From positions 62,001-126,000 of IMG/VR virus record IMGVR_UViG_3300032562_000003: DNA of 64,000 nt. One strand, given 5' to 3'. Below the pieces are notes generated by a model, which saw only the letters and a list, made by a program, of their open reading frames with translations, had not been told where the DNA came from and made no database searches. Shown in pieces: positions 1-19,942 of this stretch. The translations under genes and the position numbers were made by a program. Position 1 is the stretch's first letter; each line of letters opens with the position of its first letter.

Positions 1-666
1 GGCGGCTACATACAATGGAAGAATGTATCGATGGACCAGTCACAGCTTTTAAACTTCCTCTATAATGATCCATCAGGATTTATGGACATGATGGGTAGTG
101 AAATTGAAGCAGCAGACAAAAAGTTTAACAAGAAAGACAAGAAGACCAAACTAGTAATTCGTTGGCACGACGCAGGTGACTTCTTCTCTCCACAATATCT
201 TGCAATGGCATATTCACTAGCTAAAAAGTATCCTAAAGTAGACTTCTATGCTTACACAAAATTAGCATCGGTTGCTAAATCAGAAAAGCCTGATAACTTC
301 AAGATTAACTATTCAATGGGTGCAAAACCTTCTCAAGAAAAAGAAATCGATTTTGCTGTTACTAAAAACAGTAGAGTTGTTCCTCGTGAATTATTCACTG
401 ATCTTATTGCTAAAGACGGAGCAAAACTACTGAAGGACGCCAAAGGTCGTATGCAGTTCAAAACAAAACAGGATCTCAAGGCATTCAAAGAACGCCTTGC
501 TGCAAAATACAGTGTAGATCCAAAGTCAATACTAACATACGATGAAATGATGTCAACCCCAGTTAGTTCCGAAAAAAACAAGTACAACGTGATCGTCATG
601 CCGGGAGACGGTGACGACTCTGCAAACAGAAGTGACGTTCTAAACAGCTTCCTGCTAATGCACTAA
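1..666 (+). CDS. Gp88-like phage protein, 5'-truncated by the window edge
   Basis: Frame 1 is open from base 1 (GGYIQWKNVS-MDQ...). Motifs IRWHDAGDFF and FYAYTK are typical of the phage gp88-like family. Confidence 0.6.
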   Translation, partial: GGYIQWKNVSMDQSQLLNFLYNDPSGFMDMMGSEIEAADKKFNKKDKKTKLVIRWHDAGDFFSPQYLAMAYSLAKKYPKVDFYAYTKLASVAKSEKPDNFKINYSMGAKPSQEKEIDFAVTKNSRVVPRELFTDLIAKDGAKLLKDAKGRMQFKTKQDLKAFKERLAAKYSVDPKSILTYDEMMSTPVSSEKNKYNVIVMPGDGDDSANRSDVLNSFLLMH

Positions 667-2000
667 AATTCAAATAAATCTAGGCCCGATAGTTCTTTCT
701 TAGGTTCGAACATCGGGTCTTTTGTTAAGTATGTATCGTTATCCGTATAGATAACTCTGAACTTATGCTTATTGGTTAGAACAGACTTTATGTCATCGAT
801 GCAGATTATCTTTCTACCTAAATCTTTTATAAAATCAGCATACTTTACAGTGGTTTCATTGCATATCTTAGCAGTGCTATTGTTTGACTTCTTTTCAACA
901 AAGTTATTGATACAGTTACTCCAGCTGTGAAATACCGTTGATTCCATAGCTATAGCATTGGATAGTGATCCTACTTGATACCAATCATTTGCAGTAGGGT
1001 ACTTTTCATAAGCAACTATGATGTCATTAGCCATCGTTTTCTTATTGGTTTCAAAAAAGAATTTCTTGTTAAAGTTATTAGTCCATCGCTGATTTTCAAG
1101 CACAAATGTAGGTAATTGTATGTGCTGTTCATAAAAAGCCATGCCATAGCTTTCTACGGTGCTAGGATTAAATGCTATCCTAGACCCTGAAATGAAATCT
1201 ACTTTTTCTTGTCCTATGATCCCTACCTTAATTTCGTATTTGGCATTGATAGTTTTCAGACGATCTTCAAACTTCTTAGCGCCGGTGGCACTGGTCATGA
1301 TACGGGCCGGCAGTTTAACCTGATTTATCAATTCTATAAAAAGTTCGGGCTGTTTTCCGTCTTCCCATCTACCTACAAATAAAATACCCTCGCGAGGTCC
1401 GCTGTATTTTTCGAGCAATCCTTTTTCTGATATAGGAATAGGTAGATACTCTGCGTTAGAGAATGTCGATTGATTAAACCTACTTTGTGTTCCAATAGTA
1501 AGGCTATTCAACTGTAACTGCTCACGCATCATTTCATTGACACTGTCCAAAAAAGGATTTTTAGTATCTTTAAAAATCTGTGATTCTAGGTGAGTGTAAG
1601 CGATATTTTGAATACAATCAGATAATCCTAATGCGGCGGCAACTTGTATAGTTTCATAGGTGTTGCATACAAATGCGTCATAGATGTTAGTTGTTAATGC
1701 TTTAACGATTGCATCTCTAAAGTTAGCCATGCGTTCATAACAATAGCTATCTTCATACATAAAAATTGCACTGTGATCAGTGTATTGAAGCGGAACCTTA
1801 GGATAAATTACATTAACCTTAAGCTCTTTAACAAAATCTTCTGCAAGACCCTGTGGAACTTTATCTGTAATGATATCAACTTTTATGCCATGACTACTCA
1901 TCATTTCACAGAAACTCTTTGCGAATTGTCCAATTCCACCATGCGGAATTAGGGTCTGTGAACTAACCAAAAAGCCAATTCTGTGAGTATATAAGTTCAT
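663..2000 (-). CDS. GT-B (GT4-like) glycosyltransferase with C-terminal extension
   Basis: HGGIGQF N-terminal loop, ILFVGRWEDGKQPE, and PSTVESYGMAFYE (ExFG-type motif). Confidence 0.85.
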   Translation of the reverse strand: MNLYTHRIGFLVSSQTLIPHGGIGQFAKSFCEMMSSHGIKVDIITDKVPQGLAEDFVKELKVNVIYPKVPLQYTDHSAIFMYEDSYCYERMANFRDAIVKALTTNIYDAFVCNTYETIQVAAALGLSDCIQNIAYTHLESQIFKDTKNPFLDSVNEMMREQLQLNSLTIGTQSRFNQSTFSNAEYLPIPISEKGLLEKYSGPREGILFVGRWEDGKQPELFIELINQVKLPARIMTSATGAKKFEDRLKTINAKYEIKVGIIGQEKVDFISGSRIAFNPSTVESYGMAFYEQHIQLPTFVLENQRWTNNFNKKFFFETNKKTMANDIIVAYEKYPTANDWYQVGSLSNAIAMESTVFHSWSNCINNFVEKKSNNSTAKICNETTVKYADFIKDLGRKIICIDDIKSVLTNKHKFRVIYTDNDTYLTKDPMFEPKKELSGLDLFEF

Positions 2001-2230
2001 CTAGCAACCAACAATAGATGATAATCTTGAATCGTGTACCAACGATCTATCCTATAGGTAGTTCCTAATTCATTATATGTTAGTCTCTGCGATATTCTAT
2101 ATGCAGTTTTAAACCAAATCCAATCTCCGCTTTGACTGCACTTGTGTGGAAAGAAACAGAACATTAATCGAATTTCATCTGCACCCCTTATCCAAATTTG
2201 GTTAGCCTCTGTGTTGACCATATGCCACAT
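1997..2230 (-). CDS. Small hypothetical protein
   Basis: Fills the gap between queE and the GT and overlaps the GT start by 4 nt. True start uncertain. Confidence 0.6.
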   Translation of the reverse strand: MWHMVNTEANQIWIRGADEIRLMFCFFPHKCSQSGDWIWFKTAYRISQRLTYNELGTTYRIDRWYTIQDYHLLLVAR

Positions 2231-3112
2231 TTACGTTCCCCATTGGTTCTTCCAGAGCGTGACCTGCAATCTATCACTATAACGAAGCCCATGCTTCATT
2301 GCTGCTAGTGCCACGTTCTTGTTATTCAGTTGATACACACTTTCTACGCCACCAACTGGCATCAGATAAACATCACCCGTAAATCCAGCATCACGGTACA
2401 CTTGAGTCGTTTCTAAGGCCTCATCAATGTCATTTTCTGTAGCTACAACAAACTTTAGATACGTGTGTCCAACTTCCTCATAGCTGCATACGATATCGGG
2501 CTGAATCGCCTTCTCGCGTGCTTCGCCCGAGCAGCTTAGTTTGGCACTGACAGAAAACGTAATCTCACGATCCTTGTCATCTGAACCAAATCCTAACTTT
2601 CCACCTTCATACACCCAATCCTCTAGATAGTGTCTAAGTTCATGAGTAAGCGGCTGGGTGCCATTTGTCTCAAAGGTGATTTCTCGCAGACCCTTCATTT
2701 TGGGATGACTCAACAAAGACGGATATGATCGTTGCCACGTAAGCAATGGTTCTCCGCCAGTAATAACAAGATGCTCTCGCCTCCATTCATTGAACGGTAG
2801 TATTACCATAATGTCATCAACTATTTCATTGACCGTCTTGAATGGAGACAAGTCCTTGAAGCGAGGATCCCAGCTAGCATAACTGTCACACCCGGTGCTG
2901 ACTAATGGTAGAGATTCATAATTTTCATAAGGAGTATTCTTATGAGCGAAGGCGATAGCATCAACCTCGTCACTTAACTCACCTTTGGGCATTCCGAAAC
3001 CAGCACATTTGAAGTTACAGCCAAACGTGCGTAAAAATACCGACGGGACGCCTTGATATCTTCCCTCGCCTTGAATTGAGTAGAATAACTCACTGATCTT
3101 TATTTTTGTCAT
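2231..3112 (-). CDS. queE: 7-carboxy-7-deazaguanine synthase QueE (radical SAM)
   Basis: ISELFYSIQGEG, FLRTFGCNFKC...GCDS, VITGGEPLL, FETNGT, and C-terminal RYSDRLQV. Confidence 0.93.
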   Translation of the reverse strand: MTKIKISELFYSIQGEGRYQGVPSVFLRTFGCNFKCAGFGMPKGELSDEVDAIAFAHKNTPYENYESLPLVSTGCDSYASWDPRFKDLSPFKTVNEIVDDIMVILPFNEWRREHLVITGGEPLLTWQRSYPSLLSHPKMKGLREITFETNGTQPLTHELRHYLEDWVYEGGKLGFGSDDKDREITFSVSAKLSCSGEAREKAIQPDIVCSYEEVGHTYLKFVVATENDIDEALETTQVYRDAGFTGDVYLMPVGGVESVYQLNNKNVALAAMKHGLRYSDRLQVTLWKNQWGT

Positions 3113-3548
3113 TTTCTTCTTTCAAGTTATCATTTTCGGACTTATGCTGATTACTCGACAAGTATCGTATTAGTTCTTTGTCCGTTGGTTGAACCGCATA
3201 GTTATTTTTGAAAAATATTTCATAACTGTCGCTGCCGTATTTACCAATACCATAGAGCATTGTAGCATCATCATGATCCCAATTCAAATAATCTCGGGTC
3301 ATTCCAAGCAATCTTTTTACCCGAACATTAGTCATGCCTAAAGGAGAGACTACACGTTTGATATCGTCTTCGATAGCTAACAGCAACTTCTCAGGTGTAT
3401 CCCAACTCGTTAAAAACTCAGGTAATACTTTCTTTACTTGCTGCCTGGATGTTTGGTTCAACATGATTACTCCGACCATGTGTTGCCATGGTCCTTTTAT
3501 TTGCTGCTGCACCATCAAGTCGGCTCGCATTCTGTTAGATTTATCCAT
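3090..3548 (-). CDS. MBD4-like HhH-GPD DNA glycosylase
   Basis: VGVIMLNQTS and the HhH motif LYGIGKYGSDSY, matching the MBD4 glycosylase signature (LNxT...GIGKYxxDSY). Confidence 0.8.
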   Translation of the reverse strand: MDKSNRMRADLMVQQQIKGPWQHMVGVIMLNQTSRQQVKKVLPEFLTSWDTPEKLLLAIEDDIKRVVSPLGMTNVRVKRLLGMTRDYLNWDHDDATMLYGIGKYGSDSYEIFFKNNYAVQPTDKELIRYLSSNQHKSENDNLKEENDKNKDQ

Positions 3549-3705
3549 GCCAGTGTCTAATTGCGTTTTCGATAATAAAAATGTTGGTAATCACAGACTG
3601 GGTTATTAAGACTGTTCGAATCCAAGCGATCCGATCAGACTCTATATCACAAGGAGAAGCCTTTTCTCCTAAAGCCTTAGCCCATAATCCCCAAAGTTTA
3701 TTCAC
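3541..3705 (-). CDS. 54-aa small phage protein missed by the ORF track (MNKLWGLWAKALGEKASPCDIESDRIAWIRT...)
   Basis: Manual translation. The GTG start overlaps the queD stop, and the stop overlaps the glycosylase ATG, so it is coupled at both ends. Confidence 0.75.
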   Translation of the reverse strand: MNKLWGLWAKALGEKASPCDIESDRIAWIRTVLITQSVITNIFIIENAIRHWHG

Positions 3706-4211
3706 GCAAAAAGGTCCTCATTCCATTCACGGTGCCCTTCTCTGAATGCCATATTGCTTTGAGTCTCGCGCACTTCGACGCGATAGCACCACAGCCGGGC
3801 CGCCTCGGAAGGCCCCCACATTTCAGGAATATAAACTCCATTGACATACTTATAAAGCATGTCGGCTAAGCTTTCGCATCCCAATTTCGGGAGTATAGTT
3901 AACTTCATAAGACCACGCTTTTCTGCTTCTTTATACCAGTCAAGTTCCGGGTCATCAGAACTAACTAATGTGGTATGGTCAAATTGGTCTTCAAGTACCT
4001 TCTTTAGCTCCTTAAGACCGCCATAATCGGCGGCCCAATTACGAACGTCTAGCTCGTTAGTTCCAAAATAGAACTTCATAGAAAAGCTATATCCGTGAAT
4101 CAAATTGCAATGAGAATCTGCTCTCCATTGCCGATAAGCACAAGGAAACGCATCGTGGTATTCCTTTGTACTAGTATATGCATATGATACTGGTTGTAAT
4201 GTCATTTTCAT
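3702..4211 (-). CDS. queD: 6-carboxytetrahydropterin synthase QueD
   Basis: HCNLIHGYS, DQFDHTTLV, GCESLA and VEVRET motifs. Confidence 0.9.
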   Translation of the reverse strand: MKMTLQPVSYAYTSTKEYHDAFPCAYRQWRADSHCNLIHGYSFSMKFYFGTNELDVRNWAADYGGLKELKKVLEDQFDHTTLVSSDDPELDWYKEAEKRGLMKLTILPKLGCESLADMLYKYVNGVYIPEMWGPSEAARLWCYRVEVRETQSNMAFREGHREWNEDLFA

Positions 4212-4217
4212 TCTTTC

Positions 4218-4430
4218 TTACGTAAATCGTTCAACGGTTATGATACCGTAACGATACATTTTTGCTTCACAGCCAATTCTTTCTATGACTGCTTCTGCTA
4301 GCTTAATCATTTTTACACTGTTACCACACAGTATGGTAAGCGGAAACTCCTTCTGATTTAACAGAATGAAGTTTTCCACCATAACATCAACGTCTTGATG
4401 TCGTACACCATGTAAATCTAGATTTAGCAT
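4218..4430 (-). CDS. Small Smr-like domain protein
   Basis: N-terminal LDLHGV and the later ILCGNS resemble the Smr DLHG...ITG-G pattern. Confidence 0.55.
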   Translation of the reverse strand: MLNLDLHGVRHQDVDVMVENFILLNQKEFPLTILCGNSVKMIKLAEAVIERIGCEAKMYRYGIITVERFT

Positions 4431-5104
4431 TTTCCCATTCTTGCAATGCTTAGGAATTCATTTCTAGCAGCAGGGTCAGTCTTGAATCCACCACCTAAAC
4501 GAACAGTTACCGTTGAAGATCCGGTATCCTCAACACCACGCGATTTCACGCAATAGTGCTGTGCATCAATCATAACTGCAACATCCTCAGTATCTAGAAT
4601 AAATTGCAGAGTATGAAATACCTGTTCAGTCAGTCTCTCTTGAATTTGAGGACGCTTACTGAAGTATTCGACAATGCGATTGATCTTAGACAACCCAAGA
4701 ACCTTATCCTTAGGTACATATGCGACCGTCGCAACTCCATCGATGACCACAAAATGATGCTCACAGTTAGATTGAACGTTCACGTTTCGTTCTACTACCA
4801 TTTCGTTATATTTCATCTTATTCTCTACAGTCGTACACTTCGGGAATGCATCATAATCCAAACCCCAAAATATTTCGTTGCAGTACATTTTAGCAACCCG
4901 CTTTGGCGTTTCAGCCAAGCTGTCGTCTGTTAGATCAAGTCCTAACGTTTTCATAATATGTTCGAAATCTCGTTCGATGATTTCAATCTTGTCTTTACGG
5001 TCTAATCCGTTATCTTTAAACGGAGTTTCTACTCCGACTTTAACAAGATGTTCATGGACGCTACGACCCAGATCGGGGTCCGTTTTGGTTTTGTTGTATG
5101 ACAT
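4424..5104 (-). CDS. folE: GTP cyclohydrolase I
   Basis: ETPKRVAKMY, SNCEHH, GLSKINRIVEYFSKRPQIQERLT and HYCVKSRGV. Confidence 0.97.
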   Translation of the reverse strand: MSYNKTKTDPDLGRSVHEHLVKVGVETPFKDNGLDRKDKIEIIERDFEHIMKTLGLDLTDDSLAETPKRVAKMYCNEIFWGLDYDAFPKCTTVENKMKYNEMVVERNVNVQSNCEHHFVVIDGVATVAYVPKDKVLGLSKINRIVEYFSKRPQIQERLTEQVFHTLQFILDTEDVAVMIDAQHYCVKSRGVEDTGSSTVTVRLGGGFKTDPAARNEFLSIARMGKC

Positions 5105-5169
5105 AGTAAATCCTTCCTTACGCGGATGTCAATTTTGAGTGCGTCACCGTTGTGTGACACATGTATTTA
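5105..5169 (-). promoter_or_regulatory. folE leader: TAAATA promoter, two hairpins and SD
   Basis: Minus strand reads TAAATAC-at-GTGTCAC-acaacg-GTGACGC...ATCC-gcgtaaggaa-GGAT-ttact-ATG. Confidence 0.45.
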
Positions 5170-6342
5170 GTACTTTGATTCTCTTGTATATTTTCTATAA
5201 TCCGTACGATCACGATTCCACTTCTCCCCGTTTCCTTCAAGGATATCGCAAATACGATCCACAGTTTTATCGGTCCAATCACTGATCTTGCCCATATTTG
5301 CGTGTGGACGACGCAGCAAAGGATCTAGCTTGTTGATCGCATCTTGAATAGACCACGGAATGTACAAACGCTCAGGATCATTAGCAAAAGTTTCAGGAAA
5401 CGAACGATATGCGGGATACAGCACATTGCAACCCAATGCATCAGCCTCGCTTACAGTGTTGGATACCCAATCTTGTAATGCACAGTTGAAGACTACTCGG
5501 CTATCGTTAACAATCTCATAGTATTGATTCTTTTCCAAATCTTCATATAGCGTTAATTTTCGATCTTCGATCATCTTGCGAGTGCGTTGCATGTAGCTGT
5601 CATTGTTGCTTTTCAGCTTGCTGCCGCTACAAATAACGAATTCTACATTTTTGCTCGGATGTTGCTTGTGCCATTCATCGATCAAATCGAGATAGAAGTC
5701 AGGTTGCTTCTCCTGATCCCAGCGTGCAGAGAAAACAACTCGCATACGACGGTCATTGAACGGCTTGATACGTTCAACTCGACTTTGCACCTCATCCTTA
5801 CCAAAAGCAAGACCGGAAATATTATAGATGGGAGCAGTCCAACCAGCAATGGCCATGTGCGCAACCATTTCTTCATTGGTTGCAAGAACACCGTCGACAA
5901 ATTCGTTAACCATCTTCTCGTAATGCCCCATCCAGCGTTCCATTCCCCATACGTGAACAAAATCATCAGGGTCAATCGTTTGTGCTAGACAGCGAACATA
6001 TACTTTGGGTCTCATGTCATATGGAATCTGATCCATGATATACGGAAGAGACTCAATTCCCGGCTGAAACATATCTTCAAAGTAGATAACATCTTCTTGT
6101 GTGATCTTACCTTCCTTCATCAGCTTTACCAAATTCATCATCTGGCTCATACCGAAATAAGAACGACCATGTGCGTCTAGCACTTGACCAGTTACGATAG
6201 CCTTGCTGCTATCGAGCGTTTCGCCCGGCACCACTATGTAGTCGATGCCCCTACGATCAAAGACTCTAGTATTCCAGTATGTCAATTGGAGAGTGTACCG
6301 AGCCTTATAAGGCTCCAATCCCATATAGTATAGTTTACGCAT
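5167..6342 (-). CDS. GT-B glycosyltransferase (second)
   Basis: VVFSARWDQEKQPDF and NCALQDWVSNTVSEADALG. Confidence 0.82.
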   Translation of the reverse strand: MRKLYYMGLEPYKARYTLQLTYWNTRVFDRRGIDYIVVPGETLDSSKAIVTGQVLDAHGRSYFGMSQMMNLVKLMKEGKITQEDVIYFEDMFQPGIESLPYIMDQIPYDMRPKVYVRCLAQTIDPDDFVHVWGMERWMGHYEKMVNEFVDGVLATNEEMVAHMAIAGWTAPIYNISGLAFGKDEVQSRVERIKPFNDRRMRVVFSARWDQEKQPDFYLDLIDEWHKQHPSKNVEFVICSGSKLKSNNDSYMQRTRKMIEDRKLTLYEDLEKNQYYEIVNDSRVVFNCALQDWVSNTVSEADALGCNVLYPAYRSFPETFANDPERLYIPWSIQDAINKLDPLLRRPHANMGKISDWTDKTVDRICDILEGNGEKWNRDRTDYRKYTRESKY

Positions 6343-6355
6343 AATATTGTCCTAA

Positions 6356-6388
6356 TAAAAAGGTAACGGGTGGTTAACCACCCGTTAC
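6356..6388 (-). terminator. Rho-independent terminator
   Basis: Perfect 26-bp palindrome gtaacgggtggttaaccacccgttac (6363-6388) followed by a T-run on the minus strand. Confidence 0.75.
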
Positions 6389-6402
6389 TGTATGTCGATA
6401 CT

Positions 6403-6636
6403 TTATCGACGGGTATTAAGAAGTTCACGTTCCTTAAACTTCTCTGCATCGATTTCCCATTGATTCTTTGCAGGTTTGCTTGCAACTGTCTTTTGGTACT
6501 GCCGATAGATATAGCTCTTGTTGTTATATAAATCTCGCTCATCATATCGATAACCGTAGTCTCTACAGAAAATACGGTAGTTCTCCAAATCTTCAAAGAT
6601 TTGATTGACGATAGACTTATTGTCGAGCTTTGCCAT
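6403..6636 (-). CDS. Hypothetical protein, 77 aa (MAKLDNKSIVNQ...)
   Basis: SD TAAGGA lies before the ATG at 6636. The longer start at 6735 in the track is unlikely. Confidence 0.7.
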   Translation of the reverse strand: MAKLDNKSIVNQIFEDLENYRIFCRDYGYRYDERDLYNNKSYIYRQYQKTVASKPAKNQWEIDAEKFKERELLNTRR

Positions 6637-6646
6637 TTTTAGTTCC

Positions 6647-6742
6647 TTAGATGGTGAGTTGTTGAGATTGAGTAGTATTATAGAAAATCGTGGCACCGTT
6701 TTCACCGTCTTCTGAAACGGTAATTTCAATATCACGATTTGG
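6647..6742 (-). pseudogene. Orphan duplicate of the dpdL C-terminus
   Basis: Translates PNRDIEITVSEDGENGATIFYNTTQSQQLTI*, versus the dpdL end PNRYIQISVSEDGENGAELTFTTA*. Confidence 0.85.
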
Positions 6743-6817
6743 GTTAAAAATTTTATCTCATACTGGTCTCCTTTAAAGGTTTAGGCATAAATACAATGAT
6801 GAAAGAAAGATTGAACT

Positions 6818-7585
6818 ATGCCTAAACTTCAAGAGCAACATAATTATACTTGCGTATACTGCGGGAATCAAGCAAAATGGATAAGTGTAAATTCTAAGGT
6901 TTTCCGTTGTGTAGAAAAAATTACTCAATGTCCGGGCTTCATCGCAAAGGCAGAATCTTCTAGGAAAAAAAACATTACTCCTGAGGAAAGGAGAGTCCAC
7001 ATGAAGAAGATGAGTGAGGTTGGGAATAAGAAACTTCAGCAACTGCATACTGATCCTAACTGGGTAGAAGAAAAGGGTAAGAAAATTTCTGATGCTTTGC
7101 AGCAACGAGGTGGACATACCGGTGAACGCAATCCGATGTTCAATAAAAAACATACCTCTCATACTAAACAGATGCAATCATCGCGGGCATCAAACAGATC
7201 ACCTGAGTCATATCAAAAAGCTACACTGACAAAAATAGAACGTGGAATTTCTATACCGAAAGAACTCAAGACAGAATGGGAATTATATAGAGAGCAAGTC
7301 ACTAATTTCACTAATACTAGCTGGAAGTATGCAGAACATATTATTAATCCGAACAATCTAAAAAGAGGAAATGAATACGAACTAGATCACCGATTTAGCA
7401 TTACAGAGGGATTCAAACAAAGTATTCCACCTGAAATTATAGGCCATGCTGCCAATCTAGAACTGTTATTAAAAAGCGATAATAGATCAAAACGGACAAA
7501 ATGTTCCATCACTAAAGAAGAACTTTATGCTGTGGTAAAAGTTAGTTCTGCTCCATTTTCTCCGTCTTCACTCACTGATATTTGA
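6818..7585 (+). mobile_element. Free-standing HNH homing endonuclease (antisense)
   Basis: ELDHRFS...GHAANLELLLKSDNRSK, a NUMOD3-like NPMFNKKHT segment, an N-terminal CxxC, and its own TAAATA at 6788-6793. Confidence 0.85.
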
Positions 7586-7971
7586 ATATATCTGTTAGGA
7601 TATTTAGACGCAATAACTTCATATAAATCTTCTGCTATCATTTCGCAAGATTTATAATCTAATTGCAAAACGCCGTTACCGTATAAACTTTCCAACCAAC
7701 GCTTGAATTGTATAAATTCAATTGCTCGGTTAGAATGCTCTACCGCAATCGCCACCTTAAAATGAAAGATATGTCGGTGAGGATGTGCCAGAAAACTAAC
7801 GTCATATTCATCGCCAGTCTTAAGGTTGGGATCGTCTTCAGCAGCAGGATACCTATGAATGCCTTCGCGTTGAAAGGTCACCCACACTTTACGCTTTGCC
7901 CTTGCGGAGATTCTATTTCGTTGATCGGCTAGAGCCTGAATAGCTTGTTCGGGTAAATTATTAGTATTCAT
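7525..7971 (-). CDS. dpdL: QueD-paralog T-fold protein, DpdL-like (predicted CDG decarboxylase)
   Basis: FLAHPHRHIFHF fits LxxxHRHxF; also IEFIQFKRWL and SCEMIAEDL. Start reassigned to MNTNNL at 7971. Confidence 0.72.
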   Translation of the reverse strand: MNTNNLPEQAIQALADQRNRISARAKRKVWVTFQREGIHRYPAAEDDPNLKTGDEYDVSFLAHPHRHIFHFKVAIAVEHSNRAIEFIQFKRWLESLYGNGVLQLDYKSCEMIAEDLYEVIASKYPNRYIQISVSEDGENGAELTFTTA

Positions 7972-7978
7972 TATTTCT

Positions 7979-8173
7979 TCAGTAATCATTATATTCAATA
8001 ATATCAGACATTTGACGTTCTTGCAAGCGCTTAGCTGCCCGAAGTTCTTCAAAGGTATGTATACGTTGCATAGCCAGAATTTTTCGCACCGGCTCTTTTG
8101 TTTCATTGGCAATTTGTTCAGTTAGCAAATCCAGTTCGACTTGCAGAAGATTAATTTTGCTGGTCAAGTTCAT
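7979..8173 (-). CDS. Small coiled-coil hypothetical protein
   Basis: 64-aa ORF in operon order, with SD GGAG upstream. Confidence 0.65.
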   Translation of the reverse strand: MNLTSKINLLQVELDLLTEQIANETKEPVRKILAMQRIHTFEELRAAKRLQERQMSDIIEYNDY

Positions 8174-8239
8174 TTTTATACTCCACTGCTTAAGATTTAT
8201 TTTAACGTTTGTGTATATAATTTCAACCTATTTGGATAA

Positions 8240-9790
8240 CTATTCTAAAACTTCTAACATAGCGTCATCGCTATCTTCAACAACTTCTTCGATTTCAGGA
8301 TCAGGTTCTTCTATAGTAAAACACTCCTCAAACTTTGAAAGAGCATTTGTAGCCCTTTTTCCGGAAAACCCTTGTCCGGCCTTCATCTGCTGCCAGAATA
8401 GATTATATTGATCAATCATTGCAAGGCTTTTCTCACGATCCTTTAGAGAAAAAATCTTATCAATAAGATCACCGAATGTGGTACCATCAAACTTGTCCAA
8501 AACCATTTTAGGATTAATACCCGAGTCTGATTTACGATTGGCTTCTTGTACCGCATAAATGTGCCGATATACGTTATGTGCTTGCATCAATGTATAACTA
8601 AGAGTGTCCCAGCTGGTCTTCGTTTCTTTGCCGTGTTGCCCCAGAAAGCCTGGTCCTCTGTAACAGAGATCCTTAACCATCATTATATCAGTTACAGGGC
8701 TATCACTAAACACTTTATGGATGCCGTCTTCCAAAACCGCATCTTTGAACTTGCGAGTATCAGTCGCATAATTTTTGTTTTCAGCAGTTTTTTCCATCGA
8801 ATACGTCCACTTCGTGTTATGTCTAAACGTATTGTTGTTATACGCAAGCCCCTTTGCGGCCGCGTAGAATGGAGACGCACAATCAAACGTGATTTGCAAA
8901 TTTGGATTGTGATACTTGCGTATTGCTCTTTGAATATCGGTGAACAAAATAGCGTATTCTAGAATAGAAGTACCCAAACAGTGAATAAGATCATGTTTGC
9001 CTGGCTCAAGCAGACCATCATGAATGATGTTAACCATACGCTTTAGCATCAGATGCACGTCGATCTTTGTTTGACCACCAAACGCCCATCCGTTGAAATG
9101 ATTGTCTGGGTAAATATTAGGATCGCAATACTTCTTCATTTCTTCATACCAATCATCAGACTGTTTATGATTACGTCCTTGTAGAACGTTTAGAAACTTA
9201 CAACGGCCATCACGATTAGCAATGAAATACTCATTGTTAATATGAGTAGCAGCAATAGCGTCCTCAATGGTTCGAATGCCGTGCACGGACTTACCCGTTT
9301 TGGGGTCTTTGATATGATATGTAGTAAGCGACTGTGAAGGAATGTCGAGACACATACCGTAGTCCATGTACTCGTCCATCCACTTCAAAACCTCAGTGCG
9401 TTTCTTCATGGCCTTCGGGCAGTTAGGATCTTTCCAGTCAGCGGGCCATTGACACTTTAGAATTTGGAATCCACCAGAATCACCTAACATGAATGTATTT
9501 TTACGATCACGCTTACGAATGATGCTCTCATTGTGATCATTCTTCGTAATGTCTAGATTAGCGTGACCAGCTGAATACAGGCCCCACTTGTAAGTGTACA
9601 GTCCTTCTTTTTCGTTCAGAAAATTTAGCTTTTCAACATTACCGTTTAATCCAACAGGTATTCTAGCCGAATCAAAATAGTTTTCACCCTCACGTTGTTT
9701 ACCTAAACCAGCAATAAAAAATGACGATACTGCCGGCAGGAACAAAGCCCAGTCTGACTGGTGTGCGTTTGATAAGTTAATTTGTTCCAA
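8240..9790 (-). CDS. dpdA: DNA-guanine transglycosylase, DpdA2-like (TGT family)
   Basis: TGT motifs MLGDSGGFQI, CLDIP, LNVLQG, WAFGG, HCLGTS and TFDCASP, next to folE/queD/queE. Confidence 0.88.
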   Translation of the reverse strand: MEQINLSNAHQSDWALFLPAVSSFFIAGLGKQREGENYFDSARIPVGLNGNVEKLNFLNEKEGLYTYKWGLYSAGHANLDITKNDHNESIIRKRDRKNTFMLGDSGGFQILKCQWPADWKDPNCPKAMKKRTEVLKWMDEYMDYGMCLDIPSQSLTTYHIKDPKTGKSVHGIRTIEDAIAATHINNEYFIANRDGRCKFLNVLQGRNHKQSDDWYEEMKKYCDPNIYPDNHFNGWAFGGQTKIDVHLMLKRMVNIIHDGLLEPGKHDLIHCLGTSILEYAILFTDIQRAIRKYHNPNLQITFDCASPFYAAAKGLAYNNNTFRHNTKWTYSMEKTAENKNYATDTRKFKDAVLEDGIHKVFSDSPVTDIMMVKDLCYRGPGFLGQHGKETKTSWDTLSYTLMQAHNVYRHIYAVQEANRKSDSGINPKMVLDKFDGTTFGDLIDKIFSLKDREKSLAMIDQYNLFWQQMKAGQGFSGKRATNALSKFEECFTIEEPDPEIEEVVEDSDDAMLEVLE

Positions 9791-10145: not shown

Positions 10146-10877
10146 TTACTTTCCCTGACAAGGAATCATATAGCGATATACTGCCAGACCACTATCAACG
10201 ACAATCTCTGCAACGCCCTGATCAGACATTCTGATGGTCTTGTCACCGTCTAAGTCTAATACGGACAAGAACACCTTTACCGGCAAATTCCAAACTTTTG
10301 TTAGCTTTCCGGTAATGTTAGTTTGGAACACAAAGTTACCAGAGTGAGACGACTTGTCACCAAAGAAAAACTTGAGTTCGTTGTTTTCGACCTTCGTTGA
10401 GAAGTTTACTTCTTCACTGTTAGCCTGTGCTTGCTTCTTAAGACGTTGAATGCCGGCGTTTGTAGGCTCAAACGTGATATCCCAAGTTGCTCCGTTGAAC
10501 TTAACTGGAGCAACAGTAGCTTCTATGACAGACTTAGCCATCAGTCGGTAGTCATTAACAAAGTCACCATTACTAGTTTCAAAGTGAATTGATGCAGGAT
10601 GATCTTGTCCATCGTATGTTTCGCGTACAAGGTTTATAGTTGAAGTGTCATCATAATCCTCGAATCCTAAAATAGTCTTTAGCTTAGACAAGTTAGGCAT
10701 ACCAAACGTGCCTTTGAATTCTGGGATCGGATTCTTGAAATCACCAAACAGAATAAGCGATCTGTCAGTCGCCAATCCTGCAATTTTTGTTTCTGTGTCT
10801 GTACCCACAACCTTTATAAGCTCGACTACACCGAGTCCTTGCGTGTGTTGGATCAGATCAACTAAGTAATCTTTCAT
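10146..10877 (-). CDS. Probable sliding clamp (gp45-like)
   Basis: 243 aa, directly downstream of polB, with a clamp loader elsewhere in the window. Assigned from size, context and family recall. Confidence 0.55.
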   Translation of the reverse strand: MKDYLVDLIQHTQGLGVVELIKVVGTDTETKIAGLATDRSLILFGDFKNPIPEFKGTFGMPNLSKLKTILGFEDYDDTSTINLVRETYDGQDHPASIHFETSNGDFVNDYRLMAKSVIEATVAPVKFNGATWDITFEPTNAGIQRLKKQAQANSEEVNFSTKVENNELKFFFGDKSSHSGNFVFQTNITGKLTKVWNLPVKVFLSVLDLDGDKTIRMSDQGVAEIVVDSGLAVYRYMIPCQGK

Positions 10878-10952: not shown

Positions 10953-12197
10953 TTAGCCGAAAGTAAACAACGAACTAAATGTACTATTAGTATTGGTGTC
11001 ATATCTGATTTTCCAATCTAACACACCTAACAGGTTGTCTATCTTTTCATCCACTAGTTTACGTTCCATATCAAGATCATCGAATGGTAGTTCTAGGAAC
11101 CATTTTGGAAGTCGTAATTCATCGGTGGGATATGCGATTGAAGTAATACCTAAGGGATTTGATTTTAGTGTACACACCACAACCTTCATGCCGTCGACAA
11201 TTTTTTGGCTGTACTGGTCGCTATTCATCTTACGCAGTTGATTGTAGTGAATGGCGGCCTTAGCATGACCAACACTGCACTTACCGGTTCTCTCATACTT
11301 AATGGTATGATTTGTCAAATTATTAACTGATTTAGGTGAACCCTTAGTCCAACTGTCTTGTTCTGAAAGCTTTCTTTTAAACTCTTTGATCTTTTCGATC
11401 ACTTCGTCTCGGCCCTTACCCTCTTGAATTACCATACAAAGAATTTCCATAAGAAATTCCTGAACGTACTTAGGTGTATCTGCACGCTTTAGGTCTAGAC
11501 CCATAGCTTTGATTTCACCTAATTTACCTTCCTTATCCTTGCGTTTACCTTCTTTGTCGAAGATGTTGATTGCGTAACGCTTCTTTGTAATAAAGATAGA
11601 ACGATCACCGATCAATTCTCTACCAGCTTTGATGACCTCACCGTTCTTGCGGGGACAATGGAACGCTTTCTCCATGAAAGCAGGAAAGCTAGCGTTAGTT
11701 TGCTCTGCGATGTTGTCGTACAGTTCGATGCAAACTTCCTTGTTCCATTCTATTTCACCTTGTTCGATTCTATCTTTTAATATAGAATATGCAGTGAAGT
11801 AGCAGGAGTCAGTATCACCGTAGATGATCGCCTCACCTTCGTGAGTGTATTCACCTGCAATGATTTCATTGATCTGGCTCATCATGTGCCTAACAATTTG
11901 ACGACCAGACAAAGTAACTGACTGTCCGATCCGCTTATCATAAAACCTGCAATATTCGTTCAAAATGGATCCATATGTAGAGTTCAAGAGAATTTTTTTT
12001 ACTAACTGTCGTTTGTCCCAATACTCCATTGCTAACCCCCAAACTGATTTATATGCTTCCATTGGATGAATGGAGCGGTCTCGTATTTCTAATCCGAAAC
12101 CAGTTATGTATTCAACAAGACCAATTTTGTCTTTGTTTTGAATAAAATCATTCACTTTATTAGTATCGTATTCCAATATAATTTTCGTTAGATTCAT
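10953..12197 (-). CDS. polB: DNA polymerase B, C-terminal subunit (motifs B and C)
   Basis: EYWDKRQLVKKILLNSTYGS, IIYGDTDSCY, KKRYA and KAMGLDLKRADTP. Confidence 0.93.
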   Translation of the reverse strand: MNLTKIILEYDTNKVNDFIQNKDKIGLVEYITGFGLEIRDRSIHPMEAYKSVWGLAMEYWDKRQLVKKILLNSTYGSILNEYCRFYDKRIGQSVTLSGRQIVRHMMSQINEIIAGEYTHEGEAIIYGDTDSCYFTAYSILKDRIEQGEIEWNKEVCIELYDNIAEQTNASFPAFMEKAFHCPRKNGEVIKAGRELIGDRSIFITKKRYAINIFDKEGKRKDKEGKLGEIKAMGLDLKRADTPKYVQEFLMEILCMVIQEGKGRDEVIEKIKEFKRKLSEQDSWTKGSPKSVNNLTNHTIKYERTGKCSVGHAKAAIHYNQLRKMNSDQYSQKIVDGMKVVVCTLKSNPLGITSIAYPTDELRLPKWFLELPFDDLDMERKLVDEKIDNLLGVLDWKIRYDTNTNSTFSSLFTFG

Positions 12198-12251: not shown

Positions 12252-13151
12252 ATGGTGGATTGTGCTATTTGTAACAAAGAAATGAAACGAGTGACTAGTA
12301 GTCATTTAAAAACTCACAATATAACTACGGCTGAATACTTAGCGCAATTTCCAGGATCTGTTTTATTTTCTGATGAGCTAAGGCATGCATACGGAAAACA
12401 CGCGAGAGATAACAACCCAATGCATGATCCAGTTAGTGTAGAAAAAGTAAGAAACGCATTAACTGGTAAACGAAAAACAGAGGAACATAAACAAAAATTA
12501 TCAACCGCACGAACCGGAGTATCTTGGGGAACCCACACACCTGAACATAAAGAATACATGAAGGTTGTCAGCAAGATTAATATGGAAGAGAGAATAGCCA
12601 ATGGATGGAAACAGAAACCGTGGACTGCGGAGAGAAGAGCCAAACAGTCTACTAAAATGATAGGAAATACCATTGGGTTAGGCGGCTCCGGAAATAAGGG
12701 TAAAAAGCTTGATCTATCAGATAACCAACGACGCAATAGGAGTAAAAAACGAGTAGAATTCATGTCTAAGAACGATACTCCTAAAAAACATACTTCTATT
12801 GAATTGTCGTTTATTGAATTTTGCAAGAATAATGATATATTGTACATTCATCAGCATCCTATACATACTGAAAAGGGTAGTTGGTTATTTGATTTCTTAT
12901 TACCAAATCTAAATTTACTAGTAGAAGTTGATGGTGAATATTGGCACACATCTAAAAGACAAATAAATCGAGATTTAATAAAAAATAACGTGGCATTGGC
13001 AAGCGGACATACAATATTGCGCTTATCAGACACTAACCTTGATTTCTCCTTTATCTTCGGCAGCAAGGATGCAATCATTTCGCATACTAATGGCATAATG
13101 GAAAGTAGGATTCAATCGGTAAAAAAATCATCAGGTAAAGATTTACCATAG
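12252..13151 (+). mobile_element. Antisense homing-type endonuclease (Vsr/DUF559-like PD-(D/E)XK, with zinc finger and NUMOD3-like repeats)
   Basis: CAIC...HLKTH, FDFLLPNLNLLVEVDGEYWH and RDLIKN. SD AAGGAG and TAAATA (12215-12220) lie upstream. Confidence 0.85.
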
Positions 13152-14791
13152 AGTATTTCTCTAACTGCGTATTGTTTTTTCTGAAGTTTTTTACGTTCAG
13201 TATACCACCGAGAAAGTAGTCCTGGAATCACTCCTTCTTTTTCGTAAGTAAAGATGGTACCATTTGCTGAAAGGATCCATGGTCTGTTACTGTCGAAGAT
13301 CATCTTCCAAATTTCAGCAGCAGACATTTGTACACTTCTACCATCTTCATAGTCTATCCAAAGGGTAGTTCCGCGTTCTTGATTCATGATTGCTGTATAC
13401 TCAATTGAGCCAAACAATCCTTCCCACAGAATTGCACCAATGACGCCTTCTTCCTCGCTGTCATCTCCGAACTTTTTCTTCTTCTTGTTCTTCTTTTCAG
13501 AAGCCAATCTCATGCTCTTTTCGTGCATGTATTGGTCAGTCAGTGTTTGACGAACTTGACCTATGATGGTTTCCGGAGACATGTTCAGCGCTCGAATGTC
13601 AGACGGATACAGAGAGTTGATGTCAACTGCACCAGGATATTCGTGCATTCCTTGTTTAGGAATAGCAACAAACGCACCAGCTGCCGGAAACCCAGTATCT
13701 TCTTTGGGCTTCTTGTTAGGTACGATCATTCCACGTGCGTGAGCTTCATTGAAGATAGCCATTTCGATCATCTGCACCGAACCCATAACTGTCGGAAGAA
13801 GTACGCTATTCTCGTGTGCTAGTGCGTTAGCAAGATCAAGGAACTTTAGCTTATTGTGAATTTTAACCATAAGCATCGTGTCTTGTCTGTTATACTCCAC
13901 GAACGTTTTAAAGTCCTGATTGTATAACTGATCCAAACTGCCTTCGTACTGAGTTTTACGTTCACCTACTTCCATCTCACCGATAGCATCAAGAGAATAA
14001 CTATGACGAGACTCGTAGTTGTACTTCTTATACAGTTGAAGGTAGTCCATATGAATTCTACCAACTAGATCGTATGTTTCTTCTTCCTTGCCGAAACGTT
14101 CATAGGTACGAGTCTTAGGGAGTTTCCCCAGCAGACAAAACTTACGAGTATCGTTTTTAGACATGATTCTAGTAACGCGATTAACCGTATACGGAATGTC
14201 GTATCCCTCTGAGTTCCAGCCAGTTAGAATGTCAGCATCTTCGATCAACTCAAAGAAGGTTTCAAACATCTCTATTTCAGAACGAAACAGAAAGCAGTTT
14301 GGAAAATCTTTAGTTAACTCTTGCGCAGTTTCATCTGTCATGTGCTTAGGTGGCATGACCAACGTAATCAGTTGATCAAGCCAATCTAGATACATTGAGA
14401 TTGCAGTTACTGGATTGAACGGATCACTAGTAGGACTAAATCCTCGCTCAGGATCAAAGTCCACTTCAATGTCGAAAAAGCAAGTATGAAGCTTTGGTGG
14501 TTCAGCATTAAGGTAGTTATCAGCCAAACACCTAAATACTACGTTAACGTCGCTCTCAAATAGTTTTTTGTTACTATGTATTCTGCGTTCCTTCTCGAAT
14601 TCGCTACGTTTACGAGTAGAGAACCGAGACAGCGGATCACCGTAAATAGAACGATACTTTCCTTTAGGATCAGCATAGTACATTACGTAGTTCGTAGGGA
14701 ACTCTTTGTATGCACGTTTACCTTCAGGAGTACGTTCTACAACGTGGATTCGATCTGCGTTGGAATCTAATACTGCATCGACATATGCCAT
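13112..14791 (-). CDS. polB: DNA polymerase B, N-terminal subunit (3'-5' exonuclease and motif A)
   Basis: FFDIEVD, TGWNSEGYDIPY, YNRQDT, AVDINSLYPS and GLLSRWYTERKK. Confidence 0.95.
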   Translation of the reverse strand: MAYVDAVLDSNADRIHVVERTPEGKRAYKEFPTNYVMYYADPKGKYRSIYGDPLSRFSTRKRSEFEKERRIHSNKKLFESDVNVVFRCLADNYLNAEPPKLHTCFFDIEVDFDPERGFSPTSDPFNPVTAISMYLDWLDQLITLVMPPKHMTDETAQELTKDFPNCFLFRSEIEMFETFFELIEDADILTGWNSEGYDIPYTVNRVTRIMSKNDTRKFCLLGKLPKTRTYERFGKEEETYDLVGRIHMDYLQLYKKYNYESRHSYSLDAIGEMEVGERKTQYEGSLDQLYNQDFKTFVEYNRQDTMLMVKIHNKLKFLDLANALAHENSVLLPTVMGSVQMIEMAIFNEAHARGMIVPNKKPKEDTGFPAAGAFVAIPKQGMHEYPGAVDINSLYPSDIRALNMSPETIIGQVRQTLTDQYMHEKSMRLASEKKNKKKKKFGDDSEEEGVIGAILWEGLFGSIEYTAIMNQERGTTLWIDYEDGRSVQMSAAEIWKMIFDSNRPWILSANGTIFTYEKEGVIPGLLSRWYTERKKLQKKQYAVREILYGKSLPDDFFTD

Positions 14792-19923: not shown

Positions 19924-19942
19924 AGTATAATCCCCGTTTTAA

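Follow-up and report, generated by a model that had tools for sequence, protein, structure and literature searches.

A 7-deazaguanine DNA-modification cluster with a predicted glycosyltransferase conserved beside dpdL in an uncultured jumbo phage

Introduction

A predicted glycosyltransferase is consistently linked to the 7-deazaguanine pathway gene dpdL in an uncultured jumbo phage and in about a hundred related and unrelated phage loci, which points to a sugar-bearing deazaguanine that has not yet been described. Here, we report the analysis of a window of 64,000 nucleotides (positions 62,001 to 126,000 of IMG/VR record IMGVR_UViG_3300032562_000003), in which the genes for making 7-deazaguanine and, by inference, for inserting it into DNA in place of guanine lie together with two GT-B (GT4-like) glycosyltransferase genes, here GT#1 and GT#2. 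GT#2 was found next to or within about 4 kb of dpdL in every GT#2 locus examined, that is 73/73 flank-eligible loci of the phage's own clade and 25/25 loci in other lineages, 9 of the latter being phages in culture.

The starting point was a sequence-only reading of positions 663-9790, which described a co-oriented 7-deazaguanine run lacking queC but carrying two glycosyltransferases with no evident acceptor, and proposed that these glycosylate a deazaguanine derivative or add a second modification layer. The observation is confirmed, with the main genes all in place on the minus strand, although several details of the description required correction. The interpretation is partly supported, in that at least one glycosyltransferase belongs to the deazaguanine pathway, now on much stronger grounds than position in a single genome.

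Results

The gene run

The following features were identified.

663..2000 (-), GT#1, 445-aa GT-B (GT4-like) glycosyltransferase, accessory to the cluster
1997..2230 (-), 77-aa ORF without predicted function
2231..3112 (-), QueE, 7-carboxy-7-deazaguanine synthase, radical SAM
3090..3548 (-), MBD4-like HhH-GPD DNA glycosylase, accessory to the cluster
3702..4211 (-), QueD, 6-carboxytetrahydropterin synthase
4218..4430 (-), 70-aa ORF without predicted function
4424..5104 (-), FolE, GTP cyclohydrolase I
5167..6342 (-), GT#2, 391-aa retaining-type GT4-like glycosyltransferase, the conserved partner of dpdL
6403..6636 (-), 77-aa small ORF between dpdL and GT#2
6671..6742 (-), relic of the original 3' end of dpdL
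6818..7585 (+), homing-endonuclease gene (NUMOD3 motif) inserted at the 3' end of dpdL
7525..7989 (-), DpdL, a QueD paralogue and predicted 7-carboxy-7-deazaguanine decarboxylase
7979..8173 (-), 64-aa small ORF between dpdA and dpdL
8240..9790 (-), 516-aa divergent DpdA-like DNA transglycosylase (TGT fold, predicted)
10146..10877 (-), 243-aa protein between PolB and the cluster, probably a sliding clamp

The base-synthesis genes were readily assigned. FolE matched Pfam GTP_cyclohydroI at 3.4e-62, while QueD matched Pfam PTPS at 8.5e-16 and NCBIfam QueD at 1.9e-8 and keeps the Cys of the CxxxHG motif, as CNLIHGY. QueE matched Pfam Radical_SAM at 2e-5, its N-terminal motif was matched by five NCBIfam QueE models at 4e-12 to 1e-10, and it is 44% identical to the annotated QueE of phage BUCT-ZZ01. 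DpdL carries LAHPHRHIF, which is the published LxxxHRHxF signature (PMC10516641), matched phrog_17812 at 1.6e-31, and is 36% identical to the DpdL of Cellulophaga phage phiST and 52% identical to that of Acidovorax phage ACP17.

The run is not purely co-oriented, since the plus-strand homing-endonuclease gene (Pfam NUMOD3 1.1e-4; phrog_5104 and phrog_23051) sits in the 3' end of dpdL. This gene is absent from the related loci L009 and L010. The 24-aa relic is 62.5% identical to the present dpdL C-terminus, and matches the C-termini of the endonuclease-free orthologues in L009 and L010 better than the present end does. The ORF at 4218-4430, which had been read as Smr-like, gave no Pfam or PHROG hit and that label found no support, but the ORF is conserved in L010 at 71%. 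The 77-aa ORF at 1997-2230 matched phrog_7749 at 3.6e-5 and was found by tblastn only in copies of this same genome (L006-L008), not in the relatives L009, L010 or BUCT-ZZ01. Genes are called in L006 at both small ORFs flanking dpdL, neither of which had a family hit; ORFs of 68 and 87 aa in L009 and L010 hold the position between dpdL and GT#2, and ORFs of 69 and 65 aa that between dpdA and dpdL. The 243-aa protein at 10146-10877 is a homologue (32% identity) of the Phosso protein annotated "DNA polymerase III sliding clamp beta". The arrangement is far beyond chance. The same order recurs in 80 IMG/VR loci.

The 516-aa protein had been described as dpdA2-like, which holds only distantly and at profile level: hhalign to the nt-1 DpdA2 gave 88.8% with E 2.5e-6, and no Pfam, NCBIfam or PDB sequence hit was obtained. 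It contains the motifs DSGGFQ, LDIP, LNVLQG, GWAFGG, IHCLG and FDCASP, and the TGT motifs are invariant across relatives down to 24% identity. Its AF2 model (pLDDT 85.8) had only QTRT1 (2.1e-6) and archaeosine TGT (5.5e-5) as PDB fold hits at E<=1e-3. Homologues lie next to queE in Pseudomonas jumbo phage PA5oct (Wroclawvirus) and next to queF, queC and folE in Vibrio phage 2.275.O.

The HhH-GPD glycosylase matched Pfam at 3.7e-7, above the gathering score, and PDB MBD4 glycosylase domains at 1e-16, with GIGKYGSDSYEIF and the catalytic Asp aligned. It is present in 5/38 clade loci. In Phosso a protein known by its annotation alone as a "glycosylase" lies directly upstream of dpdL.

No queC, queF, gat-queC or thymidylate-synthase-like hydroxymethylase was found in the window, which covers only 64 kb of a genome of roughly 305 kb. 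Searches by tblastn with QueC, QueF, Gat and YhhQ of Vibrio phage 2.275.O and with T4 gp42, a-gt and b-gt found nothing, and Pfam scans of the non-overlapping ORFs of 100 aa or more that were taken as genes showed no QueC and no thymidylate-synthase family. A queC or hydroxymethylase elsewhere in the genome had been named beforehand as a refuting condition; in the complete genome of BUCT-ZZ01, the closest cultured phage with both glycosyltransferases, there is no queC and no ThyA-like hydroxymethylase, only ThyX.

The two glycosyltransferases

The sequence-only reading had invoked the T4-type enzymes that glycosylate hydroxymethyl-pyrimidines, but the glycosyltransferases are GT4-like and not T4-type. 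Neither shows similarity to T4 a-gt or b-gt. GT#1 matched Pfam Glycos_transf_1 at 5.7e-5 (below the gathering score) and Glyco_transf_5 at 3.8e-3, and its Atlas structure matched GT4 families at TM 0.63-0.68. GT#2 gave only weak Pfam GT1 hits, below gathering scores, although 42/69 of its relatives match Glycos_transf_1. Its AF2 model has pLDDT 95.3, and Foldseek against PDB gave BshA (2.5e-13), then MshA, PimA and others, that is retaining GT4 enzymes acting on small acceptors; the T4 enzymes do not appear among the top 50 fold matches. R207, K212 and E299 are invariant or nearly so, and D291 with E299 forms a D-x7-E motif, the Arg/Lys pair and the acidic-x7-Glu motif being conserved, so that GT#2 looks like a working GT4 enzyme on the evidence of sequence and predicted structure.

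All 6 tblastn hits of GT#2 among 50,697 phage records fall in the 28 dpdL-positive records, where about 0.003 would be expected by chance. Homologues in PA5oct and Phosso were added by pairwise and local search. The loci of other lineages include ACP17, PA5oct, BUCT-ZZ01, Phosso, BUDD, X1 and BCSR5, and the linkage was also seen in loci L099-L101 and L108-L123. The GT#2-dpdL pair travels with two different DpdA types, and within the clade GT#2 is better conserved than DpdA.

GT#1 is only loosely tied to the pathway, being present in 23/38 clade loci. Orthologues are found in BUCT-ZZ01 next to FolE (39%), and in L009 and L010 beside sugar-tailoring genes, an NAD-dependent epimerase/dehydratase and a methyltransferase. 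GT#1 relatives also occur away from the cluster in BUDD and X1, and in Erwinia jumbo phages that gave no dpdL hit.

Discussion

Relation to known systems

The closest known system is that of phiST (FolE, QueD, QueE, DpdL, DpdA3; Cui et al., NAR 2023, PMC10516641), which has the same queC-less core, the LxxxHRHxF signature in DpdL, a position beside the replication genes and a TGT-superfamily enzyme as the presumed inserter. However, phiST has no glycosyltransferase and no MBD4-like glycosylase, and its transglycosylase is a 259-aa DpdA3 with no detectable similarity to the 516-aa protein. In PA5oct, a DpdA of the 516-aa type (35% identity) is followed directly by a GT#2 homologue, DpdL and QueE beside a split PolB, while ACP17 has the order DpdA2, GT#2, DpdL, QueE. 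Neither gave a GT#1 hit, their glycosyltransferase genes are annotated "hypothetical", and no paper in the literature searched links these genes to the pathway. PA5oct DNA resists enzymes with G in their sites and is attacked by nucleases that sense hypermodified bases (PMC12191111), and is reported to be G-modified, of unknown chemistry.

The assertion that no acceptor is evident overlooks a precedent. In huimycin biosynthesis in actinomycetes the GT4-type HuiG puts GlcNAc on the exocyclic N2 of a 7-deazaguanine base, and dapiramicin carries a disaccharide at N2, requiring two sugars, deoxy-sugar enzymes and methyltransferases (bioRxiv 10.64898/2026.04.15.718813). These are soluble secondary metabolites made from preQ0 (queC present), with no DNA or tRNA insertion enzyme. 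The T4 alpha- and beta-glucosyltransferases on 5-hydroxymethylcytosine are likewise GT-B fold enzymes that use a nucleotide sugar to decorate an already modified DNA base after replication, for protection against restriction, but here the acceptor would be a purine analogue without a hydroxyl group. In eukaryotic tRNA a GT-B enzyme of the QTMAN family glycosylates a 7-deazaguanine derivative already in a nucleic acid, giving mannosyl-Q and galactosyl-Q. A single Atlas feature hit pointed to a QTMAN cluster, but this lead remained unconfirmed. None of 69 GT#2 relatives matches Pfam QTMAN_N, and the sugar in tRNA goes onto a cyclopentenediol hydroxyl that 7-deazaguanine lacks.

Alternative explanations

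The best-surviving alternative, although doubtful, is that GT#2 is an auxiliary enzyme of base synthesis acting on a small-molecule intermediate (a pterin, CDG or DG), for example by making a transient glycosyl conjugate that DpdL or DpdA needs, and that the DNA ends up with plain dDG. The best structural matches do have small acceptors, and one match is a tetrahydrobiopterin glucosyltransferase (5zes, rank 33). In L108-L123 GT#2 is the last gene of a QueD-QueE-FolE-DpdL-GT2 operon, and GT#2 goes with dpdL whichever DpdA type is present. Also, DpdL plus DpdA of phiST and of ACP17 gave no dDG in E. coli, and the authors suspected missing enzymes. On the other hand, phiST makes fully substituted dDG without any GT#2 homologue in its cluster, no known decarboxylation or base-exchange step needs a sugar donor, and the second glycosyltransferase with sugar-tailoring genes is left unexplained.

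It is unlikely that the glycosyltransferases act on something unrelated to deazaguanine, such as a hydroxymethyl-pyrimidine made by an enzyme encoded outside the window, a virion or host protein, or host envelope glycans, with their position reflecting only shared early or replication-time expression. The small part of the genome covered, the GT#1 relatives away from the cluster or in phages without a dpdL hit, and the commonness of glycosyltransferases in large viruses allow for this reading. It is opposed by the linkage of GT#2 to dpdL in every locus examined, across unrelated phage families, by the lack of a hydroxymethylase in the window and in BUCT-ZZ01, and by the lack of resemblance to the T4 enzymes.

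Least likely is that the cluster, or its FolE-QueD-QueE-DpdL-GT2 core, makes a soluble glycosylated deazapurine similar to huimycin, a metabolite acting on the host or on competitors and not built into DNA, since, although the huimycin and dapiramicin pathways combine the same core with a GT4-type glycosyltransferase, methyltransferase and deoxy-sugar genes, the same kinds of genes as are seen beside GT#1 in L009 and L010, and 16 PolA-UDG phage loci lack a recognisable DpdA near the operon, a DpdA-like transglycosylase is present in 69/69 flank-eligible clade loci and in the cultured phages, PA5oct DNA behaves as G-modified, and bacterial gene clusters for such secondary metabolites lack nucleic-acid insertion enzymes.

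A proposed pathway

We tentatively favour the explanation that this is a queC-less DNA-modification system of the phiST type with a glycosylation step added. FolE, QueD and QueE turn GTP into 7-carboxy-7-deazaguanine by established chemistry. DpdL would then remove the carboxyl group to give 7-deazaguanine, as predicted by Cui et al. 2023, which is consistent with dDG in phiST but has never been reconstituted. The divergent DpdA-like protein would exchange guanine in phage DNA for the deazapurine, as inferred from fold, motifs and context.

The presence of the genes, their order and the linkage of GT#2 to dpdL are results of the sequence analysis, whereas sugar transfer by either enzyme, the identity of the sugar and its attachment site are inferred without chemical measurement. 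Several considerations oppose the proposal. 7-Deazaguanine has no hydroxyl group, while the best-matching retaining GT4 enzymes are O-glycosyltransferases acting on small molecules and not on DNA. An N2 sugar would lie in the minor groove and could hinder replication, and a TGT-type enzyme might not accept an N2-glycosylated base. In the 16 PolA-UDG phage loci GT#2 sits in the base-synthesis operon with no recognisable DpdA nearby, which fits a step at the small-molecule level as well as it fits DNA glycosylation. In favour of placing the glycosyltransferase downstream of 7-deazaguanine, phiST has dpdL, no glycosyltransferase and plain dDG.

In this view GT#2, a nucleotide-sugar-dependent GT4-like enzyme inherited together with dpdL, transfers a sugar onto the deazaguanine, either on the free base before insertion or on the base in DNA. 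The exocyclic N2 is the one attachment site with a biochemical precedent, and C7 or O6 are alternatives. Where present, GT#1 would add a second sugar, which in relatives may be tailored by the neighbouring epimerase/dehydratase and methyltransferase. The expected result would be a bulky sugar-bearing deazapurine that protects the phage DNA from restriction.

The gene cluster and its surroundings

The cluster is real and well delimited, and the sequence-only reading was correct in placing a run of 7-deazaguanine pathway genes and two glycosyltransferases here. Between 663 and 9790 fourteen features were identified, all but one of them on the minus strand. From high to low coordinates they are:

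8240-9790 (-), a 516-aa protein of the predicted DpdA/TGT type
between this gene and dpdL (-), a 64-aa ORF
7525-7989 (-), DpdL, a QueD paralogue and predicted CDG decarboxylase
6818-7585 (+), a homing-endonuclease gene with a NUMOD3 motif, overlapping the end of dpdL
6671-6742 (-), a relic of the dpdL 3' end
between the relic and GT#2 (-), a 77-aa ORF
5167-6342 (-), GT#2, a GT4-like glycosyltransferase
4424-5104 (-), FolE (Pfam 3.4e-62)
between folE and queD (-), a 70-aa ORF
3702-4211 (-), QueD (PTPS 8.5e-16)
3090-3548 (-), an HhH-GPD glycosylase
2231-3112 (-), QueE (radical SAM plus the QueE N-terminal motif in five NCBIfam models)
between queE and GT#1 (-), a second 77-aa ORF
663-2000 (-), GT#1, a GT4-like glycosyltransferase by weak Pfam hits and a database structure

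The 70-aa ORF, which the sequence-only reading had called Smr-like, gave no family hit. The absences noted in that reading hold for this window, as tblastn with QueC, QueF, the Gat domain and YhhQ of Vibrio phage 2.275.O and with T4 gp42, a-gt and b-gt found nothing, and Pfam scans of the non-overlapping ORFs of 100 aa or more that were taken as genes showed no QueC and no thymidylate-synthase family. Within the 64-kb window a DpdA-like protein, FolE, QueD and QueE are encoded without QueC, which is the gene content associated with DpdL. The exact sequence of the cluster is found on a 304,896-bp freshwater metagenome contig (Ga0316217_10000008, JGI 3300031813) and on copies in other samples. 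Megablast of the region against 50,697 phage records found nothing, and all comparisons were therefore made at the protein level.

The homing-endonuclease gene sits in the 3' end of dpdL. The present C-terminus of DpdL differs from that of orthologues free of the mobile gene, while the 24-codon relic downstream matches them, and the mobile gene therefore seems to have brought a substitute gene end. The same pattern, an HNH gene plus a duplicated folE end, is seen at 12065-13003 of L010, one of two related loci (L009 and L010) used for close comparison. The glycosylase at 3090-3548 is specifically like the MBD4 glycosylase domain (1e-16), with the catalytic Asp kept. MBD4 removes T or U opposite G, and no role next to a G-replacement pathway suggests itself for such an enzyme, which was present in only 5/38 loci of the clade, while an annotated 'glycosylase' lies directly before dpdL in the phage Phosso.

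Upstream of the cluster lie a clamp-like gene and a family-B DNA polymerase that is split into two ORFs (10953-12197 and 13112-14791, both minus strand). A plus-strand ORF between them (12252-13151) carries a PvuRts1I-like N-terminal domain (5.4e-5), a domain known from modification-dependent endonucleases. L009 and L010 have an unsplit PolB of 901-902 aa, and PA5oct has a different endonuclease at its split. Elsewhere in the window, 17887-23139 (-) holds a block of bacterial-type signalling and secretion genes, comprising a CHASE2 sensor fused to an adenylate/guanylate cyclase, a FecR-domain protein, an unknown protein, CsgG (6.6e-52) and CsgF, the last two being curli secretion components. 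Host-like stress and chaperone genes encoding a ferritin-like protein, ClpB, DnaJ, PhoH and a GroES-like Cpn10 are found at 28504-28947, 39818-42909, 44751-45620 and 47110-47475, together with two glycoside-hydrolase-19 domains (24204-26474 and 52636-53259) and a GTA-type holin (42942-43463). Other genes, at 31-666 (+), 36277-37911 (-) and 62739-63848 (-), are a GP88-family protein facing the cluster (full length 400-412 aa in L006-L008, loci carrying copies of this same genome), a 544-aa protein with a cytidylyltransferase-like N-terminus, a SAM methyltransferase, and a sigma-70 region-4 protein. No tRNA genes were found in the window.

DpdL and the putative transglycosylase

The DpdL protein contains LAHPHRHIF, which is exactly the LxxxHRHxF signature used by Cui et al. 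(PMC10516641) to separate DpdL from QueD, in which the corresponding motif is CxxxHGH. The neighbouring QueD keeps the catalytic Cys (CNLIHGY). The DpdL signature is also present in L009, L010, ACP17, Phosso, phiST and BUCT-ZZ01, while PA5oct has HFH. By tblastn the window protein is 36% identical to the DpdL of phiST (CGPG_00067; 1e-8) and 52% identical to that of ACP17 (2e-35), and DpdL was found in 28 phage records, including ACP17 as well as phiST and its relatives, where dDG replaces all G. In the Vibrio phage Bakedbeans (gp176; L016, 6245-7396) DpdL forms the C-terminal third of a 383-aa protein whose N-terminal 250 residues or so have no family hit, a possible fusion that could hint at a partner activity.

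The 516-aa protein gave no Pfam or NCBIfam hit at E<=0.01, including the TGT (PF01702) and DpdA (PF23859) models, and no PDB sequence hit with either the single sequence or the profile. Its identity rests instead on motifs, hhalign and predicted fold. In an alignment of 12 sequences reaching down to 24% identity, DSGGF, LDxP, LNVLQG, GWAFxG, IHxLG and xFDxAS are invariant (D104-S-G-G-F108, D149, L200-G205, G234-G239, H270-G273 and D303), and these correspond to the catalytic Asp motifs (DSGGFQ and xFDC) and the substrate-pocket motifs of TGT. An AlphaFold model (pLDDT 85.8) has only two PDB fold matches at E<=1e-3, human QTRT1 (2.1e-6) and archaeosine TGT (5.5e-5), with modest TM-scores of 0.42/0.53. 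Its neighbours in the Atlas of predicted structures carry PF01702 and PF23859, and homologues sit beside queE in PA5oct and beside queF, queC and folE in Vibrio phage 2.275.O. Exchange of guanine in DNA for a 7-deazaguanine base is inferred for this protein from context only.

The sequence-only reading had called this protein dpdA2-like, which is right only distantly. Against DpdA2 of Vibrio phage nt-1 the family profile reaches 88.8% (hhalign, E 2.5e-6) over about 170 core residues, and tblastn finds no DpdA2 phage (the experimentally tested subfamily of nt-1 and VH7D), while the 420-440-aa DpdA of ACP17, BUDD, BCSR5 and BUCT-ZZ01 matches nt-1 DpdA2 at 99.9% (5e-33). We treat the window type as a separate DpdA clade. 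The DpdA3 of phiST shows no significant similarity to the window type. In BUCT-ZZ01, a 511-aa protein at the start of the locus (L004) was considered but is not a DpdA homologue; the real one there is a 416-aa protein of the DpdA2 type.

The glycosyltransferases

GT#2 gave a very confident model (pLDDT 95.3) with a predicted two-Rossmann-domain GT-B fold. Its best PDB matches are retaining GT4 enzymes that act on small acceptors, led by BshA (2.5e-13; TM 0.65/0.70) and followed by MshA, PimA, glycogen synthase, SenB and OtsA, with a tetrahydrobiopterin glucosyltransferase at rank 33. In 69 relatives R207 and K212 are invariant, and D291 and E299 are nearly so and spaced as x7, a D-x7-E variant of the E-x7-E motif; the Arg/Lys pair and this motif are donor-binding elements of GT4 enzymes. 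The N-terminal, acceptor-side domain is also strongly conserved. The window protein itself remains below the Pfam gathering score for Glycos_transf_1 (17.7 bits against a cut-off of 26.4), although 42 of 69 relatives match this family at E<=0.01, the best at 4.5e-10. One homologue (P0387, 726 aa) is interrupted by an intein (Intein_splicing 9e-6). An alignment used in structure prediction left out sequences from the annotated phage collection. GT#1 scores 23.1 bits against the same cut-off of 26.4, and its Atlas model (pTM 0.71) matches GT4 clusters at TM 0.63-0.68. The two glycosyltransferases are hardly similar to each other.

Two other identities were tried and dropped. The T4-type reading was rejected since tblastn and phmmer found no match to T4 a-gt or b-gt, neither of these is among the top 50 fold matches of GT#2, and no gp42-like sequence that could supply a hydroxymethylated acceptor was found in the window or in the complete genome of BUCT-ZZ01. 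An Atlas lead to tRNA-queuosine mannosyltransferase was rejected since none of the 69 GT#2 relatives matches QTMAN_N. The calculated pI gave no discrimination between DNA and small-molecule acceptors.

Linkage of GT#2 to dpdL

Among 50,697 phage records GT#2 hits six, from the five phages BUCT-ZZ01 (at 65%), ACP17, BUDD, X1 and BCSR5, and every one is among the 28 dpdL-positive records, where about 0.003 such records would be expected by chance. Homologues in PA5oct and Phosso appeared by pairwise and local search. In each of these phages the glycosyltransferase gene is adjacent to dpdL or within about 4 kb of it. In 80 IMG/VR loci of the window's clade, counting for each gene only loci with enough flank, dpdL was present in 73/73 and the DpdA in 69/69, while FolE was in 60/68, QueE in 37/38, QueD in 32/38, GT#1 in 23/38 and the glycosylase in 5/38. 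Nineteen further loci (L099-L101 and L108-L123), found with GT#2 relatives only 29-33% identical to the window protein, all have dpdL directly beside the glycosyltransferase. The pair occurs with two different DpdA types. A scan of bacterial genomes with a single distant query found no GT#2 relatives.

Conversely, dpdL occurs without a glycosyltransferase in phiST, which makes dDG, and in RHph_I1_18, Bakedbeans and Ahp1. GT#2 is therefore nested within dpdL contexts, as expected for a step that uses the DpdL product. Within the clade GT#2 stays 71-80% identical while DpdA drops to 35-50%; across the 80 loci (L019-L098), compared with window 5167-6342 and 8240-9790, GT#2 stays 71-99% identical whereas the DpdA-like protein falls to 35-50% in many loci. 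GT#2 of the T4-like cyanophage BUCT-ZZ01 is 65% identical although its other cluster genes are only 35-58%, which suggests strong constraint or recent transfer.

The 16 loci L108-L123 belong to phages with a UDG-fused family-A polymerase. Here the operon QueD-QueE-FolE-DpdL-GT#2 is followed by two conserved proteins (about 300-360 aa and 340-376 aa) to which our comparisons gave no assignment, and no recognisable DpdA lies within 6 kb. The first begins ...FIDSGAHS... and has LDVIFNPE, which resembles LDILFNKD in the DpdA3 of phiST, but no comparison was significant.

In relatives GT#1 is followed by an NAD-dependent sugar epimerase/dehydratase, and in L010 it is preceded by a SAM methyltransferase, while L009 adds a cytidylyltransferase-like gene, an aldolase and an FAD oxidoreductase. 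Phosphoribosyltransferase genes lie inside the deazaguanine cluster of L010 (two, 13957-15044) and of BUCT-ZZ01 (one, L004 4093-4554), but the window cluster has none. They could salvage the guanine released by base exchange, or make a deazapurine nucleotide as in tubercidin biosynthesis. The complete BUCT-ZZ01 genome, which has both glycosyltransferases, shows no gp42-like protein, QueC, QueF, a-gt or b-gt, and has only ThyX and a UDP-glucose 4-epimerase.

Interpretation

In the literature searched, no paper describes a glycosylated deazaguanine in DNA or links these glycosyltransferases to DpdL. DNA of PA5oct is targeted by END nucleases that sense hypermodified bases, and a modified G of unknown structure was inferred by the authors (PMC12191111). 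In E. coli, DpdL plus DpdA of phiST and of ACP17 gave no dDG. In huimycin biosynthesis a GT4-type enzyme (HuiG, KALB_4073; Pfam PF13439) transfers GlcNAc to N2 of a 7-deazaguanine base, and dapiramicin carries a disaccharide there with a 6-deoxy sugar and an O-methyl sugar. An acceptor on the deazaguanine skeleton therefore has a precedent, although in a soluble metabolite.

The genes, the motifs, the predicted folds and the linkage of GT#2 to dpdL are what the present analysis demonstrates, while the conversion of GTP to CDG by FolE, QueD and QueE is established elsewhere and the decarboxylation by DpdL is a prediction of others that has not been shown biochemically, even for phiST. We infer beyond this that the DpdA-like protein exchanges guanine in DNA, that GT#2 glycosylates the DG skeleton, on the base or in DNA and at N2, C7 or O6, and that GT#1 adds a second sugar. 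The suggestion in the sequence-only reading that the glycosyltransferases may act on a deazaguanine derivative is supported in part. We favour this interpretation only tentatively and at somewhat less than even likelihood, as DG lacks a hydroxyl group, the best structural matches of GT#2 have a small-molecule character, and the absence of competing genes is known for the window and not for the rest of the genome. An auxiliary, sugar-dependent step that ends in plain dDG is the next candidate but appears unlikely, a target unrelated to deazaguanine is more doubtful still, and a soluble metabolite like huimycin is the least likely; some likelihood is left that falls to none of these readings.

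The cluster belongs with the known deazaguanine systems but has a glycosyltransferase partner that appears not to have been noticed before. Deazaguanine modifications are a major way in which phages escape restriction, and of the eight derivatives known none carries a sugar. The linkage to dpdL, which held in every GT#2 locus examined, gives a concrete candidate both for a ninth and much bulkier derivative and for the 'missing enzyme' that has blocked reconstitution of the dDG pathway. The family is large, with more than 6,800 DpdA-type and at least about 8,000 GT#2-type proteins in metagenomes, on contigs up to 360 kb, and it also includes phages in culture. Knowledge of the chemistry would matter for predicting which defence systems (type IV enzymes, END nucleases, DNA glycosylases) hit phages of the PA5oct type that are used against Pseudomonas, for sequencing such genomes, and for possible enzymatic tools that label guanine positions in DNA. 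In its most far-reaching form, which we consider possible but less likely than not, many phages, including a very abundant freshwater jumbo-phage clade and the therapeutic candidate PA5oct, would carry an undescribed DNA base, 7-deazaguanine bearing one or two sugars that in some lineages are tailored deoxy or methylated sugars, made by a dedicated GT4-like enzyme that is the obligate partner of DpdL. This would be the first glycosylated purine analogue in any genome, and the dpdL-GT pair would serve as its genomic marker.
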